From the NCBI GenBank assembly GCA_000320545.1, contig ADNK01000855.1, positions 20,658 to 84,657 on the forward strand: a DNA stretch of 64,000 nucleotides, read 5' to 3'. Positions 32,158-62,989 of the stretch are shown piece after piece (the first letter of the stretch is position 1; every line of letters starts with the position of its first letter). The position numbers were made by a program, and so were the translations under genes. Under the pieces are notes generated by a model that had not been told where the DNA came from, ran no database searches, and saw only the letters and a list, made by a program, of their open reading frames with translations. Source of the stretch: Bigelowiella natans CCMP2755 (taxonomy: Eukaryota > Protista > Cercozoa).

Positions 32158-33448
32158 ATGAAACTTCGTCTCAGTGGCTGCTGTGACTCGGAGTCAGATC
32201 TACTTGTGGTGGATTTGTCCAAGCCTCAAGCCTGTCTCTCCCCAAGGGGGGTTCACTCCCACGGGTTTTGGTCCGTGTCATGCTCGGCGGTTTTGCCCCG
32301 GCGTCAGCCGGGAAAATTTTTCGATTTCACCCAAAAAAATGCAAATTTTGTTCAAATTCCTCAATGTTTTCTTCAAAAACCATCCACAAAGTGTCCAGTG
32401 AAATTGCCCAAGATGCACATTGGCGGAACTCTTGGCATCGTGTCACTGGGATGTCTCAGATGTGCCCAACCCACTTCCCTGGCGCATGCAGATTTGATCA
32501 ATGCTTTGTTCATCATTCATTGTTCATCATTCCCGCCCTTTCCATCGATCTAGCGATGTGTGCACCAGCGTGTGTGACTGATCACGTGCGCAGCGTCGAT
32601 CATCCAGTCGTGCGCGACGTCGCGACGTGTCTAGCTTCAATTTGATGATGAAGTGACAAGTGTGCATCAGAGTGGGAAGCTGTGAGTGCTTGCGTGCGCG
32701 CGCGCTGGGCACGCACAAAGTGTGCCAGTGTGCGCCATCGCGCCCACACGTCTTGCTCGTGCGTCCAATCCCAAGCAGCTCTGGAGCTGCGCGTCGCGCA
32801 TCACATCCAGCTTCATTGATTGCCGCATCGGCACCGTGCAGGCCGCTAGGAGCCACACATCGAAAACTCACCAAAGTCAAAACCACCAAAAAAAAGCACT
32901 TTTTTGGCGCAGAAACGTTCAATTTTGCGAATTTTGGAGTGGAACTTCTGGAGGTGACGGAGTTGCTCTTGACACGGCCTCTGAGCATGTTTTTTTGAGC
33001 CAACGCGCAAAGGGGACCCTTTCCGCGGCACCCAAAGTTTTTGCCCTCGATTTTTTTCCTTGAAAATCCACTTTTTTGCACCCCTTTCTGGACAATTCTG
33101 GACCTTCTCACACGTCCAGAAGTCTTCTGTGGTGCTTCGGAAGAAGTTTGGATTGGATTCCGAGCATGACACGGACCAAAACCCGTGGGAGTGAACCCCC
33201 CTTGTCTCTCCCGGGCGTTCAGGAGCAGATGTGAGATGGGGGTCACAATGTGGAAGGGGAGTTTACGAGGAGAGCGGGCGATGGATGAGGCCGATGAAGA
33301 TGTGTGCGATGATGCACTCACAAGCGCATCTCAAATTTGCTGCTGGCTTGTGAAGATGAAGCATGCCCCGGCCCCATGTCTACTAGGTCTAGCCATGTGT
33401 GCAGCACGACGCAACTTTCCCCCCACGAAAAAATTTGTGCAAACTTAG
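32158..33448 (+). pseudogene. ORF interrupted by the MITE; removing the element and one TSD copy restores a 106-codon frame
   Basis: MKLRLSGCCDSESDLLVVDLSKPQACLS|RAFRSRCEMGVTMWKGSLRGERAMDEADEDVCDDALTSASQICCWLVKMK...FVQT* joins in frame across the empty site (tcc c|gg). It has 9 Cys and 0 Tyr. Confidence 0.4.
32243..33204. mobile_element. Non-autonomous DNA transposon (MITE), 962 bp, perfect 45-bp TIRs, 8-bp target-site duplication (hAT-like)
   Basis: Left TIR 32243-32287 (CAAGGGGGGTTCACTCCCACGGGTTTTGGTCCGTGTCATGCTCGG) is the exact reverse complement of 33160-33204. TCTCTCCC flanks both ends (32235-32242 and 33205-33212). No transposase ORF. 8-bp TSDs are typical of hAT, and also occur with P and Merlin elements. 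Confidence 0.95.
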
Positions 33449-56460: not shown

Positions 56461-57387
56461 ATTCCCAGTTGTTGCCGTTGCATGCTAATAAACCATCCTT
56501 CCTGATTCTTCACGTTAACCCTGCTGCTCCTCCTCCTCCTCCTCCTTCTCCCCCTCCTCTCTCTCCCCATAGGAAGGGATGCAGGCTTTCATGATGGAGA
56601 GGAACGGGGACATGAAGAAGATGAACTTCGACGATCATCCTGAGCTGCTCAAGACGCCCTCGGAAGACGAAGACCCCCTTCCGGATAGAGTCTTTATCCC
56701 CACAAAGACAAAATGGCCGGAACCCCCCCCCCCCCATGCTCCAAAGTCGGAGGCGTACAAGGTACCCACATTCACTGTTTTCCCACCCTGCCCTCTCCCT
56801 CGTTGGCCCAATGGATCACCACACGCACTGATGATGACGCTTCGAAAAGTTCAAAGTACGTGGGGACTCAATCGAAGTTATCGATATTTATTTATCTCTC
56901 CTTCTACCGATTGGTTAGCGCTGGGAACAGCTGGAGGGCGATTTTGATCTGGATGAAGATATGATGAGGAATACCGACATCCTTTACAACCGCTACGGCG
57001 ACGAGAACTATATCCATCGAAGGGGCCGTCGGGACGAGGAGGCTTCGCTCCCTCCAAAGTCGTTCCGCCCTTATATCTGCATGTGAATGCACGTTGTAAC
57101 ATTCATATCCGTGTAGGAGCTTCACCCACCGATTCTCTGACAGATAATGACATGTACTGCACCCACGCCTTATGGTTTTTTCTAGATTTCGTGATGGCGG
57201 TTCGAGTCCCGAAGGGCAGTCTGAAAATAGAACCAGGACGCAAGACAGGCAGAAAAGAAAGAAATGGTGGTTAGACGACGATGACTATGATGACCTGAAC
57301 AAGCCTGTCTCTACGGGAATTGATCTTCAGCAGGCCGAAATTAGCGACGACCAGTTTGAGTATGGAGTCGATCTCGACAAAGATTGA
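50019..57387 (+). CDS. Large uncharacterised acidic/coiled-coil multi-exon gene (possibly two genes, or a continuation of the SCI1-like gene)
   Basis: Numerous GT-AG-bounded open exons (e.g. 51441-51574, 52489-53265, 55405-55798, 55950-56370, 56573-56762, 57186-57387 ending ...EYGVDLDKD*). No family recognised. Confidence 0.5.
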
Positions 57388-57918
57388 TGATGATGTTATA
57401 TCTGACGAGTCGTAGCACTTCCGTTTCTTTCATTTGGTTACGCCTTGCACATTATTTTGCTAAAAATCTAATAGCTTCATCAGAGCGATGATGGGGAATC
57501 TTTGAAAAAGTAGCATGCTCGTCTTACATGTGTCATGTTTGTGAGAGGCGGAAGGAGAATACGTGCACAAAGATGATGCACTTGTCGCGAAATGCATTGA
57601 AATCATGCATGCATTGCTGCTCACGGTCTTGCTGTTTGAGAGCAGAGCGCTTGTGGCATGACGACATCTGCTCATGTTGCATTTTCCAACGGGATGACTT
57701 TCTGATTGCCAATTGTCAAGACACAAGTGTCGCATGCCATGCAATTCGTTGTTCCCCATGCTGGCAGCATGGAATTCATTGAGCAAGCATGCACCACGTC
57801 AAAACAATGCAATCAGACAACGTGTGGATGCGTTGCATGCACGGCATTGTTTCGGGATCTGTGACAGACGATGGACATGCAATGTCACGTGTGCACTGCA
57901 CGTGCTGTCACTGTGTCC

Positions 57919-58105
57919 ATGGACACGCAACATCACGTGCATGCTGTGCATGCCATTGCTGTGTCTGCAATGCAGCTCATCAGTGTTGCCGGGATCGTGC
58001 TCAGCGACAACTCACCAGTGTCACTGGTGACAAGTGTGTGCGTGTGATCCGCATTGCAGACACAGCAACAGCGTGCACAATGTGCATGTGATGTCACCTG
58101 TCCAT
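57919..58105. repeat. Degenerate 55-bp inverted repeat (arms 57919-57973 and 58051-58105) with a central TCACCAGTG-T-CACTGGTGA hairpin
   Basis: 45 of 55 positions match. Nine of the 10 mismatches are transitions, including three reciprocal TG/CA pairs. Confidence 0.9.
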
Positions 58106-58345
58106 TGCCTGTCCATTGTCCGTTGCAAACTTGAAGGAGCAAATGGATGCATGCAATGTGCATGGGATCGTGAAAGAGACGAATCACACCCTTCAGTGAA
58201 AAGTGTGCGTGCACCCACAGCTCAGACTGCAGGCCCAATTGCGTGCCATCGTGAATCGAAACGAAGGGACGAAGCCACTGACTGAAGCTGCAAACGAACC
58301 ACGCACCGCTGCGCCAGGACACAAACGTTGTTCACACCGGCCACT

Positions 58346-58493
58346 GACATTGACACCAGTGCAGTTGTCAGTGCTCCTTTTCACCACTGACGTTTTTGAC
58401 ACCAGTCAGGTTGTCACTGATCACCAGTGAGGTTGTCACCAATCCCGGGCCCGGGATCAGTCACATTGACACCAGTGAGGTTGTCACCAATCC
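58346..58493. repeat. Four short degenerate direct repeats (core CACCAGTGAGGTTGTCA) around a perfect 16-bp palindrome ATCCCGGGCCCGGGAT
   Basis: Copies near 58353, 58400, 58422 and 58470; palindrome at 58442-58457. Confidence 0.8.
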
Positions 58494-59149
58494 AGGCGAG
58501 TGCTGCCCATGGCACTGACTTGAACTTCACGAAGAGGCGCCGGATTTTCGGATGATGGACTGGCTCAATGCCCTTCGAGTGCTTCTTGGAGCTTTCCAGT
58601 GTTGCACACACTGCAAAGAGCTGCTTTGAAAATTGTCAGCAAGCGAATGATGGCGTGTTTCACTTTGTTTGGTTGTTTGGATTGTCACAGGATGTCAGTC
58701 GACTCCAACTTGGTTCTTTCTCTGCTTCCACTTCAGGTTCCGGTGGTGGGCACCTTGATGATGTTGTTGTTGATGTTGTCTCGGTTGTCCACGTTCAGTG
58801 AAATTTTTGAGGGGACGTTCAGCAGACGTCAGGTTGCCAGATTTCATCATCGCAACGTGAATTGCAGAGGGGTGGTGGTCAAGGATGCAACTGTCAACCA
58901 GACTGCAGTCTGGATCTGGTCATCGATTTTGGCACATGGAAGCGTGCAACACTGCATGAGAAGCACAGGCGTCAGTCAGGCGAATCAACAATGCACAATG
59001 ATGAGTGAACAATGCAACAGAGAGAATTCTTGCATGTTTGATGCTCACACAATGCAGACTGCGATGAGCGAGCTAGCGAGGGCTCAGCGAGCAACACGCT
59101 CAATGAATGCAACGTGTGGATTTTGTCGGCACGTTCACACAAAGCATTG

Positions 59150-62100
59150 CAAACGGTGAAATCCAAGCAGCCAGCCCTGGAGCCACTGTTGGACTGTGTG
59201 CATGCGTGCATGGACAGACTTCTGAATTGCAATTGTGAACTCACATGAAAAATCATTTGAAAAATCCAGACACAAAAACATTGCTCACAATGCTCTTTGC
59301 AATGTTGCAGGAAAAAAAGAAAAAAAAAGGACAATGCCATTGCATTAGCAGAGATTAAATTTTTTTTTGAAAAATGCAAATTAGGGCTAACCGTTTACGA
59401 TGACATGCACAATTTAGTTGATAAGTTTGCACCTGAGAAATACAATGAGCACATCTCACCACGAAACTTCAGAGTTATGGTTCATAATAATCATGCTCAT
59501 TTGCTCAATCACCAAATCAAAGAATTAGAGCAGAAAAAAAAAAGAAGTAGAATGTGATAAATATTTGTTACAAGTCCATAACAAATACAAATTTAGAACA
59601 ATAGATGAAGATAAAAGTAATTGTTTCAAATTTATTAAAAATCTTAATGACATCGTATCTCATATTAAAACAGTTAATGATGAATGGATTAAATATTTTT
59701 ATTGTGGCGATATGAGGGAATTATTAATTGAAATGATAAATGTTCACAAATATGAACCTAAAATTTTCTTTCAACATAACAGAATACTTTCATTGTCATT
59801 TAGAATTAGCAATAAACACTGTGTTATTTCTCATCCTGATTATAACAATATGAATGACATTATTACTTATGATGTAAATGAAAATAACTATGAAAAATTT
59901 ACAAAAGCAGATGATGAATTCTATCAAAAAGTTATTAAAAAAGAACACATAAGCATCTTTAACGATGAAGCATTACGAATGAATGAAGCATATCCTAAAG
60001 GACCTGCTGTAGGTAGACTAAGTGATGACACTATTGGAAATGGTATTGATGTTAATAAATGCTATACTTGGGCTTTAAAATCAATCTCTCAAATTCCTAT
60101 TTTTCATTATTTTGACAACTGTGTTAAATATGATAATCATTCTATAGAAGACCTTACAATGTATGTTGTAATGAGTTTAGATGGAGGTGAAGCTCATAAT
60201 ATCTTATTATCTAAAAGATACAACAGAGTGTATGGATTTAAATTAAAACAAATGAATGAAAATAGTTATGATACTATACTACATTAGACCTTCTAATATT
60301 GCTACTGTTAAATTTAGTAAAGCAGTTAATGAGTTGTATAAAACAGAACTTGGAACAATTCATGCTAATAAATTTATTTGTAATACAATTACAGGACAAC
60401 TTGAGAAGAAATACAATCATAAATCAGTATGTAAAATTTACAAAAATTTGAATGAAGCAAACCATTATAAAAAATTATATGGTGGTGAAATTAATCCAAT
60501 AGATGATGATTTATTTTTACTTGTAAGAACTACTAAAAAACTTGTAAGAGAAACCTTCAAACCTATTAAAGATATGATATACGACCTTGTATCCATCAAG
60601 ATGTTTAATTTATATAACAAATGTCTATCTGTAGGATTACATCCTATAGCTATTAAAACTGATTGTATTATTGTATCTGATAAGGTAGAAAAGATTAAAC
60701 CTCACTTTGATTTTAATAAAAATATTGGTGGTGTAAAATTAGAGGAAAAAACTAAAGTTATGGGTAATTATTTTATTCCTTTAGAAAATGAACTGGTAGA
60801 ACCTAAAACAATCAATATTAATAAGATTGATATTATGAATGAATGGAACACAGAAGAAATTACAAATGTATTTGATAAATACGATAGAATACTTGTGAAT
60901 GCTTTATTACCAGGTAGTGGTAAAAGTTATTCAGTTAAGAAATACAAAGGTAAAAAAATCTTGTTCGTAGCACCGTTTAATAAATTATGCCAAAACATAA
61001 GAGAGAGCGGTCATAATGCTATTACATATCATAGGCTATTTAGTCTTAATATTCACAACAACGAATGTAAATACATAAGAAAATTTGATATTTCATCACA
61101 TGATGTTATCTGTTTTGATGAAATTTATATGTATTCACTACACCAACTATCAAAAATTAAGTTGTTTATGGATAAGCATACTAATAAAAAATTTATTGCT
61201 ACTGGTGATTTAGCTCAATTAGATCCTATTGAAAACGAATATCTGTTTAACAATGTTAAAAATATTGATGTTAGAACAACTGAAGCTATGAATGCTATGT
61301 TTCCTAACATTATAACTCTTAAAATCTGTAAGAGAGTAAAAACAGATGAGGAAAGAAATACTCTCGCACAATTAAAAGAAGAAATATTTGATGTAAAAAC
61401 TAAACCATTTGATGTATTAAAAAAATATTTTAAAGTTGTTAAAAGTATGGATAAAGTAAAGACACTTAACAACATTACCTTTTACAACTTTAGATCCCGT
61501 TCAGTAGGAAAGCATATCCATAGCCTACAAAAGAAACCCAGAAAAAAAAATTATGTAGATGGTATTTGCTACTATGCTGGTATGGAGATTGTATGTAAAA
61601 AGTACAATAAGAAACCAAAACTATATGTGAACTACACTTATGAAATTATTAAAGTAAATAAAAAGAATTTGTAATACAAGATGTATGTGATATGGAAGAA
61701 ATAAGAATTCCTATAGAATTAATTAGTAAGCATTTTAGATTGTCATATGCCTCTACCTGTCATAGTTTCCAAGGATTATCAGTTGATGGTCCTATCACCG
61801 TGTTTGATGCAAATACCTGTAGAATTAATCGCAAGTGGCTCTGGACTGCTATGACTCGCTCTACTGACCTATCACAGATACAAATATATCAGCACAGCGA
61901 TAAAGAATGCTACAGATTAAAGGAAAGTATGATTACTCAAAAACTACGAATGAAAGTATCTTCGTATAGATAGATCTCAGGACAAAAGAGCTGGTAGAAC
62001 ATGGGAAGAGAAGGAACATATTGATGAGAAATGGATAAAAAGAACTGTTAATAATCACCCTCACTGCCCTGTGTGTAGATGTGGATTTACTGCTGATAAT

Positions 62101-62310
62101 GTTTCTGTGGATAGAATTGATAATGCTCAACCTCATCTGTGGAATAATTGTAGATTGACTTGTGTGGAATGTAATCTTAGTAGAAATAATCAACAGACTT
62201 ACCCAGCATTTGGTGAGTACACCCCTCAGGATGTTGAGTTTGAAGATGGCTTTGAGGATCAATGGGTGAAACCTGGGTACGAAAACACCATCACTGGGCT
62301 GGAGCTTTGA
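59150..62310 (+). pseudogene. Frameshifted fusion gene: family-B DNA polymerase + superfamily-1 (RecD/Pif1-like) helicase + HNH/EndoVII-like nuclease; Polinton-like-virus/virophage-type replication module, intronless and AT-rich
   Basis: PolB motifs: A GIDVNKCYT (~60042), B KFICNTITG (~60370), C IKTDC (~60652). SF1 motifs: PGSGKS (~60910), ILFVAPFNKL, AITYHRLF, FDE (~61114), TGDLAQLDP, TCHSFQG, TAMTRS. C-terminal YRSQDKRAGR...CPVC...DRIDN...H..NNC.LTCVECN. Frameshifts near 59320, 59540, 60272, 61662 and 61970. Confidence 0.88.
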
Positions 62311-62372
62311 GGCATCGTGTGCCCGAAAATTTGACATTTAATGTCTTTGCCATGTCAGCCACACGTGTCAGT

Positions 62373-62534
62373 TCTTCACCGGAGACTCTCCCCGCTGCTG
62401 GGCATTCCGGGATGAAAATGGGAGTCCCTAATCTTCGGACACTAACGGACACTAACGGGCAATACCGGTAATACTCCCGGTAATGCTCTTTCCGGGGATT
62501 CGCCGCAACGAGAGTCTCCCGTGAAGATCTTCAC
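62373..62534. repeat. Nested inverted/direct repeat cluster immediately downstream of the polymerase-helicase gene
   Basis: 18-bp IR (62373-62390 / 62510-62527, 1 mismatch), inner IR (62402-62412 / 62475-62486, 1 indel), tandem GGACACTAAC x2, CCGGTAAT x2, and the 14-bp palindrome GTGAAGATCTTCAC (62521-62534). Confidence 0.8.
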
Positions 62535-62989
62535 ACCAGACATCATTTCCAACCCAATGAGAATAAGGTCACCCTAAATCATTTTTATGTCGTATGATAG
62601 GAGAGACATTTTCGTTATTAGACATTTTCGTTAGATCTAGTGGGGAAGATGCTGAAATTGTCTACCAGATGATTTATTGGGAAAAATTCCCAAAGTCCTC
62701 CAAAAATATCTTCATCCCAAATTTAAAATACTTGCTATTTTTGATCCTGCGACAGCAATTTCTGGCAGAGAATTCTAGAATTCAAAAGGTGACGTGGCGA
62801 AGATGATCATGGCGGCAAGATCATGAATGGGGCATGGAGATACAGATTGGGGGGCAGGGCTATGTCCTCAGTAGAGAAAAAGGGGGCGCGGAGGGGATAA
62901 GATGTCCGATATTTGATGTTCCGAGTGCTGTCTGCCTGCGTGCCTACCACCACCCATTTCAGTATCAAATGCTTATCTTTTTCCAGACA

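Follow-up and report, generated by a model that had tools for sequence, protein, structure and literature searches.

A TpA-depleted tract in Bigelowiella natans: probable footprint of a locus-restricted TpA to TpG/CpA hypermutation

How does a stretch of 1,784 bp come to be left with a single TA dinucleotide, when its base composition predicts 112? The question is raised by positions 57562-59345 of a 64-kb stretch of the genome of Bigelowiella natans (assembly GCA_000320545.1, contig ADNK01000855.1, positions 20,658 to 84,657; this whole stretch is called the window throughout, and coordinates given without further qualification are in its numbering), where the tract lies between the 3' end of an expressed host gene and a fragment of a virophage-like element. 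A first-pass annotation, made from the sequence letters, had proposed a repeat-targeted process that mutates TpA to TpG or CpA in mobile or viral DNA, opposite in sense to the repeat-induced point mutation (RIP) of fungi, and had stated that it knew of no description of such a pathway. The process is, however, public, having been reported by Mettrop et al. 2026 (bioRxiv 10.64898/2026.01.13.699255), and the tract is a further example of that known process, not a new defence system; very probably it represents a saturated footprint of the locus-restricted TpA→TpG/CpA transition hypermutation of this organism.

Composition of the tract and direction of the change

A recount of 57562-59345 finds its sole TA at 59074, within a GCTAGC, where the window's own TA ratio (observed over expected) of 0.72 would predict 81; the Poisson probability of meeting at most one is about 6e-34. 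Observed/expected ratios for the relevant dinucleotides are 0.01 for TA, 1.92 for both CA and TG, and 0.66 for CG, at a GC content of 49.8%, and CA and TG are present in near-equal numbers (211 and 217, giving 428 together as against 223 expected). The nearest TAs outside the tract lie at 57560 and 59346, and the lone internal one divides it into TA-free gaps of 1,514 bp, the longest in the window, and 272 bp, the fourth longest; the second and third longest both fall within a miniature inverted-repeat transposable element (MITE) at 32201-33264. A scan of the window returned just two TA-poor domains, 32202-33381 and 57526-59346, host sequence elsewhere retaining its TA. In its account of the composition, namely one TA in 1,784 bp, enriched TG and CA, retained CG, GC near 50%, and the same signature in the MITE while host DNA keeps its TA, the first-pass annotation was thus accurate.

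It had also proposed that the bases be confirmed with amplified short reads or Sanger sequencing. Fourteen DNA runs of 2025, all from one organism, contain at least half of the sequence words sampled from the window. Contigs from two independent runs of that year, at single-copy depth, agree with 57000-57948 except at 57586 (C>T, in a CpG) and with 57924-59104 throughout, and since the same bases recur in both runs the tract cannot be put down to base calling. The one discrepant position is a small observation in its own right: the reference has C at 57586 and both runs have T at full depth, so that it is a CpG transition separating the sequenced lines from the reference.

Direction and specificity can be read from comparisons among copies, as had likewise been proposed. 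The most informative is a 12-kb alignment of three copies, here denoted C2494, C3010 and C777, of the virophage-like family to which the neighbouring fragment belongs, C2494 being the least mutated. At the TA sites of C2494, C3010 has TG in 319 cases, CA in 289 and TA in 257, and changes in the opposite direction number 24 (608 against 24, with the strands near-equal); for C777 the corresponding figures are 346 TG, 349 CA and 147 TA, with 5 in the opposite direction. Double products, that is CG, number 0-2, and their near-absence implies that each TA was hit once. Per half-site in the mutated domain, A>G change affects 42% of T[A] as against 2.4-4.0% of A[A] and about 3% of G[A], while transversions at TpA stay at a background level of 1-2%. 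When transversions alone are counted, identity among family copies is mostly 95-100% (except in the final two bins of 100 bp, in which C2494 is misaligned), so that nearly all of the divergence within the family comes from the TpA process.

The DNA of the window itself behaves in the same way. Part of the tract, 58498-58861, is a two-copy sequence with a paralog at G000:C1447:133124-133475 (79% identity), and all 24 TAs of that paralog are something other than TA in the window (TG 11, CA 6, CG 4, other 3), as against transitions at 8 of 153 A/T sites outside TpA. Between the window's helicase fragment and its closest relative (C2085), 34 of 40 differences are of TA type or are reciprocal TG/CA exchanges. 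These three comparisons uphold the proposal that TpA is mutated to TpG or CpA in mobile or viral DNA, in the sense opposite to RIP (TA disappears, GC rises and CpG holds at 0.66); TpA specificity and the direction TA→TG/CA are shown by the comparison of copies.

This is the TpA-only A>G/T>C substitution that forms the signature described by Mettrop et al. (bioRxiv 10.64898/2026.01.13.699255). Of the 302 nuclear mutations that arose in their mutation-accumulation lines of B. natans, 231 lay in two viral regions, one from an integrated nucleocytoplasmic large DNA virus (NCLDV) and one from a virophage. TpA was the site of 230 of these 231, each an A>G or T>C change, and the rate was about 6e-7 per site per generation. 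They further report coding sequences depleted in TpA and enriched in CpA and TpG, 124 TpA-depleted clusters genome-wide (enriched for transposon and viral domains, and defined by three consecutive 1-kb windows), and the expression of a hypermutable virophage region, and they propose an adenine deaminase of ADAT2 type as the agent, their ADAT2 candidate having residues linked to DNA editing. Substitution and composition signature are the same as here, and so, it appears, is the class of target (virophage-like and transposon-like DNA), the difference being that the present tract, at 1.8 kb, is smaller than the preprint's cluster size. CTAG, trinucleotide context and domain boundaries did not come up when the preprint's main text was searched for such terms, and further literature search returned nothing else relevant to the process; what this locus offers beyond the preprint are graded edges, fronts that differ from copy to copy, a spared multi-copy viral fragment of 3.2 kb, the absence of strand coordination, and a hierarchy of flanking bases in which sites of CTAG type are slowest.

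Make-up of the tract, its edges and its neighbours

The greater part of the tract, 57562-59005, is a patchwork. It contains an inverted repeat at 57919-58105 (arms 57919-57979 and 58045-58105), in which 6 of 12 mismatches between the arms make up three reciprocal TG/CA pairs; a portion, 58132-58314, of a repeat dispersed over at least 20 loci at 68-81% identity, in which other copies retain some TA opposite a CA or TG of the window; short direct repeats at 58354-58496; and the two-copy sequence already described. An Rfam match of the inverted repeat to MIR4228 was disregarded as a sub-threshold hairpin (36 bits, the gathering score being 180). Adjoining the C1447 paralog of the two-copy sequence is a unit of about 110 bp (G000:C1447:133473-133618) that recurs at more than 40 loci with 80-89% identity and is probably a small non-autonomous element. 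Matches to Pfam and PHROGs occur in the helicase fragment only, and the region of the C1447 paralog holds only short open reading frames (ORFs).

At 59006 homology to the virophage-like family sets in abruptly with the first 40 bp of a 5'-truncated helicase gene fragment (59006-59045, plus strand), and is then interrupted at 59046-59227 by a TA-free mini-insert of some 182-186 bp that is found in no other copy of the family; the joint 59045-59233 is present in contigs from family copies that lack the mini-insert. Apart from one scar, the mini-insert is about 99% identical to G000:C3042:15914-16091, which argues that it was already TA-poor when it inserted. The scar in question, an 8-bp insertion at 59070-59077 with the pattern CGAG-CTAG-CGAG, is missing from the C3042 paralog and bears the only TA of the tract; judged by this alignment, the lone TA at 59074 is a later insertion scar, not a spared site. 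A second 8-bp insertion of the same XXXX-CTAG-XXXX form lies at 32546-32553 (CGAT-CTAG-CGAT), both being missing from near-identical paralogs, and in the DNA examined 128 of 702 CTAGs take this form as compared with a chance expectation of 1 in 256 (8 of the 29 CTAGs in TA-poor domains and 120 of the 673 elsewhere).

As to origin, then, 59006-59345 is virophage-like and 58132-58314 is dispersed repeat, with 57562-58130 and 58498-58861 carrying no assignment. The first-pass annotation had treated the tract and the AT-rich DNA beside it as one element, which holds for 59006-59345; in contrast, the idea that 57562-59005 belongs to the virophage-like element had to be rejected, as blastn at word size 9 against four long copies of the family, including the least mutated, gave no match. 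Base composition points the same way: full conversion of helicase-like DNA (where TA makes up 11.4% of dinucleotides) would raise its GC only to about 40%, as is seen in C3010 and C777, so that a GC content near 50% argues for a different, less AT-rich ancestor.

The left edge of the tract is sharp, some 60 bp beyond the point where the host transcript ends. The last exon and 3' untranslated region of the host gene occupy 57172-57503 on the plus strand (ORF 57172-57387; RNA contig 57186-57503; raw RNA reads 57184-57551), preceded by an intron with GT..AG ends at 57058-57186, and as far as 57560 TA is at normal density; over 57552-59023 RNA raw-read depth is zero. The right edge is of another kind. 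Over the start of the plus-strand helicase fragment (59228-59600), conversion has reached 22 of 31 TA-type sites within the initial 250 bp, and then falls to 6 of 30, to 4 of 26 and finally to a baseline near 10% (Fisher P = 1e-10). The annotation's claim of two crisp boundaries therefore stands for the onset after 57561; the return of TA at 59346, on the other hand, is a gradient spread over some 250-350 bp without any step. Moreover, 12 of the 14 conversions that occurred in the window lineage since its split from C2085 fall within 59279-59567, as against 2 in the other 1.4 kb compared. Sister copies have fronts of their own, C3143 resembling the window, C3010 decaying over about 2 kb, and C777 being saturated to about 60728 and decaying thereafter.

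The window and C2085 differ at about 6 non-TA positions in 1,750 bp, and taken with the preprint's baseline rate this would represent time enough to saturate hypermutable sequence many times over, implying that most of the helicase fragment, for all its viral origin, AT-richness and multiple copies, has been no target. Adjoining the tract, 3.2 kb of multi-copy viral DNA was spared and a two-copy sequence was converted, and the tract itself spans at least four unrelated sequence units, so that targeting looks positional rather than based on element or homology. This tells against the label "repeat-targeted" used in the first-pass annotation; targeting here looks regional, and we infer that what is recognised is a silent-chromatin-like domain able to spread, and not repeat homology, viral origin or AT-richness as such.

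The spared neighbour is an internal fragment of about 3.3 kb (59228-62541, plus strand; homology to the family runs from 59006 to 62541 around the mini-insert) of an element of about 20.7 kb of virophage or polinton-like type. Truncated at both ends and devoid of terminal inverted repeats (TIRs), it encodes, in what are now four separate ORFs, a superfamily 1 (SF1) helicase (AAA_30, UvrD_C_2) with an endonuclease-VII/HNH-like tail, and has a GC content of 26-29% and, beyond 59600, TA ratios of 0.74-1.06. In minus-strand RNA over 60558-62203, contigs from run X15 have five or six CT..AC joints, equivalent to GT..AG introns opposite to the helicase ORF, and stranded raw reads of run X21 over the same interval have the same antisense direction. 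Some 500 residues upstream of the helicase core (59565-60287 and relatives) are without a Pfam match, and full-length relatives of 1,205-1,387 residues indicate a large N-terminal domain ahead of the helicase; helicase paralogs in public data carry jgi/Bigna1 names, at 74-88% identity.

Elsewhere the family is better preserved. C3010 is a full copy with TIRs of about 350 bp, C2494, C777 and C3143 are further long copies, and C2085, C132 and C1921 are deletion derivatives. The family has a packaging ATPase of Pox_A32 type (1.9e-11) alongside the SF1 helicase, and a 565-residue protein that is capsid-like by language-model similarity only (0.97 to unnamed viral clusters, 0.96 to NCLDV-capsid clusters), for which no sequence match was found in PDB or phage records; TIRs, packaging ATPase, helicase and putative capsid are thus hallmarks of the family, not of the window's fragment. 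B. natans has been credited with 38 virophage-like elements, many of the copies truncated (Blanc et al. 2015 as summarised in PMC6723459), and as far as that summary describes them the present AT-rich family fits these provirophages, being TIR-bounded, low in GC, about 20.7 kb long and equipped with packaging ATPase, capsid-like protein and SF1 helicase, with the difference that the window retains only the internal 3.3-kb helicase-HNH fragment, without TIRs. Two further observations concern the long copies: C3010 (7869-11735 and 31567-34545) and C3143 (13348-15351) contain GC-rich (52-60%), fully TA-free DNA outside their TIRs, and each of these two copies, although their flanks differ, has an island of about 4.5 kb, made up of the TIR-proximal part and the 3' half of the helicase, that is little mutated within an otherwise hypermutated element.

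The other TA-poor domain of the window is the MITE, whose 962 bp (32243-33205) include TIRs of 45 bp; its TA ratio is 0.05, and it has three TAs, all in CTAG, one of them an 8-bp scar. At least 14 full copies exist at 96-98% identity, and the sole copy examined, in C3042, is TA-poor too and has two of the three CTAGs in common, the third being the scar. On this comparison of sequences the family seems to have been TA-poor before it amplified, the state then being inherited, and without TA a MITE offers no substrate to a TpA mutator.

Constraints on mechanism and rival explanations

Several features of the copy comparisons limit what kind of activity could be responsible. Between two hypermutated copies the outcome, TG or CA, was the same at 307 sites and different at 233, and this near-independence implies that most conversion took place after the copies had separated. 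Strand coordination is absent: runs tests gave z = +1.4 and +1.6, and neighbouring converted sites fall on the same strand in a proportion of 0.38-0.51 at every spacing, which is unlike processive deamination of a single strand. Flanking bases, on the other hand, have a marked effect. In mutated domains 0-2% of TAs are retained in ATAT, ATAC/GTAT, GTAC, ATAA/TTAT, TTAA and ATAG/CTAT, as compared with 6% in GTAA/TTAC, 26% in CTAA/TTAG and 31% in CTAC/GTAG, and in 48.9 kb of TA-poor DNA 78 of the 93 residual TAs are in CTA or TAG, of which 29 are CTAG; CTAG, CTAA/TTAG and CTAC/GTAG are thus the slowest contexts. A sparing of CTAG had been anticipated by the first-pass annotation, and these 29 of 93 residual sites bear it out in part, but the one CTAG of the tract itself is the later 8-bp scar, and the copy alignment contains only 2 CTAG sites, both converted. 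A simple rule based on the 3' neighbour (TAH) was tried and rejected, T[A]G half-sites being converted as often as the others.

Taken together, the course of events was very probably as follows. Editing took place in transcriptionally silent DNA that follows closely on a host gene, its substrate comprising unrelated repeat debris, the two-copy sequence, the already TA-poor insert and the 5' edge of the truncated helicase fragment, and it decayed over a few hundred bases into the AT-rich remainder of that fragment, which stayed mostly untouched. At each site a TA is lost when its A becomes G or, on the other strand, its T becomes C, and as the product has no TpA on either strand there can be only one hit per site; the enzyme would presumably act on single TpA steps, choosing the strand at random. 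An adenine deaminase such as the preprint's ADAT2/3 candidate would fit, unproven as it is. The expansion of ADAT/TadA-like deaminases for which the first-pass annotation suggested searching is not there, a census of the genome returning six loci with the cytidine deaminase (CDA) fold and one A_deamin locus.

The most serious rival accepts the site specificity and moves the lesion to thymine. An enzyme could modify T in duplex TpA (to hydroxymethyluracil, by a base-J type pathway or as a repair intermediate), and the modified T would then mispair with G to give T>C. At a palindromic TpA this is inseparable from A>G, CA and TG being about equal wherever they were counted (211/217 in the tract, 289/319 and 349/346 in the family copies), and the lack of strand coordination, the dependence on flanking base pairs and the unexpanded deaminase genes would all suit an enzyme that reads duplex DNA; yet Illumina-based contigs read plain bases, and the preprint's ADAT2 candidate is plausible and carries the residues associated with editing of DNA (bioRxiv 10.64898/2026.01.13.699255), so that this explanation, while deserving to be kept in mind, appears unlikely. 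Less likely again, and on balance rather improbable, is that no editing took place locally: the tract would have been converted earlier or elsewhere, and 59346 would be an insertion or recombination junction with younger viral DNA that was never exposed. The mini-insert and the MITE were clearly TA-poor before they inserted, and both the sudden start of virophage-like homology at 59006 and the sharp left edge at 57561 would be natural on such a scheme. It does not account for a TA-free state that runs on for 340 bp into the helicase fragment before decaying gradually, for the crowding of recent conversions of the window lineage into 59279-59567, or for similar gradients in three other copies with fronts at other positions.

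The remaining candidates carry far less weight. Polymerase eta favours TA over AA in somatic hypermutation, and error-prone repair synthesis of this type, producing A>G at WA motifs, was among the options raised by the first-pass annotation; but A>G at ApA is at background, indistinguishable from GpA and a tenfold or more below the TpA half-site, which excludes the WA signature, transversions at TpA are likewise at background, and the outcomes have neither strand bias nor clustering, all of which makes such an origin highly unlikely. Natural selection against TA, whether through nuclease avoidance or the removal of stop or TATA signals, has in its favour that TA is mildly under-represented genome-wide (ratio 0.72), but it is scarcely credible for non-coding debris without RNA reads whose edges are gradients, given that independent copies took TG or CA almost randomly at the same sites and that TpA mutations arise de novo, without selection, in mutation-accumulation lines (bioRxiv 10.64898/2026.01.13.699255). 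Least probable of all, to the point of being negligible, is a sequencing or assembly artefact, with CA and TG being misreadings of a modified base at TpA. The first-pass annotation had itself raised this caveat, but no direct evidence for it came to light; the contigs of both 2025 runs match 57000-59104 but for the one CpG difference, and paralogs within the same assembly keep their TA.

All this said, certain points weigh against the reading of the tract as a locally edited footprint, or against parts of it. The segment 57562-58130, a third of the tract, has no unmutated homolog, so that conversion there is deduced from composition and from the inverted repeat as the only control; the palindromic nature of TpA makes A>G indistinguishable from T>C; and a concordance of 57% rather than 50% between copies leaves room for slight shared ancestry or a local context bias. 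The tract was compared in the contigs of two DNA runs only, where no change of this kind was seen; it holds no TA on which the process could still act. A regional model coupled to chromatin is something that we infer, and the hypermutable virophage region of Mettrop et al. is expressed; in addition, the RNA over the spared part of the helicase comes at least partly from paralogs, and as many of the antisense reads carry paralog differences the correlation between being spared and being transcribed is only suggestive.

Related systems and wider meaning

RIP consists of C>T change mainly at CpA, which creates TpA and lowers GC, and it needs duplicated sequence and a sexual cycle. As known from Neurospora and other fungi it resembles the process considered here in being resident in the genome, in using one class of transition in one dinucleotide context, in acting on mobile or duplicated DNA, and in its saturation and leakage. 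The differences are these: here TpA is destroyed and GC goes up, a multi-copy fragment was spared and a two-copy sequence hit, and the mutations arise in clonal lines (bioRxiv 10.64898/2026.01.13.699255). With the APOBEC/AID enzymes, in kataegis and retroviral hypermutation, there is a likeness in the context-specific enzymatic editing of foreign nucleic acid and in the local character of the hypermutation. Those enzymes, however, convert C to U on single-stranded DNA in strand-coordinated runs, whereas here the changes are at A:T pairs and same-strand concordance is lacking. Akin in chemistry are ADAR hyperediting and the DNA adenine deaminases derived from TadA/ADAT2, which share the conversion of A to I (read as G) and a preference for a 5' U or T, in other words the TpA context. 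ADARs act on RNA and are metazoan; here, by contrast, the changes are fixed in DNA, fall equally on both strands and form gradients in situ, and the deaminase gene set is unexpanded.

One may go a step further and ask what sort of editor would leave such a pattern. A tentative answer, possible though less likely than not to be right in all its parts, is a TpA editor coupled to a spreading silent-chromatin-like domain, which would act on single duplex TpA steps, with random choice of strand, and would read the flanks in such a way that a C preceding the T, in either strand, slows it and CTAG is nearly immune. If this were true, one would be looking not for a single-strand deaminase but for an enzyme that a silencing mark recruits, be it a base-flipping adenine deaminase of duplex DNA or one that modifies T; there would exist a natural TA-specific A:T-to-G:C editor of double-stranded DNA; and elements already rid of TA, such as the 962-bp MITE family, would be immune and still able to amplify.

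That a protist should subject its integrated viruses and transposons to TpA-specific A:T-to-G:C hypermutation is remarkable in itself, and to that the tract adds corroboration. It also constitutes a compact natural experiment: the tract converted to saturation, the graded front beside it and the multi-copy viral DNA that was spared all lie within a single 5-kb stretch. The constraints that go beyond the preprint, by the term search described above, are positional targeting, random choice of strand site by site, a single hit per site and rates set by the flanks; these narrow both the type of enzyme and the nature of the signal that recruits it, and suggest substrates for assay, for instance duplexes with ATAT as against CTAG.

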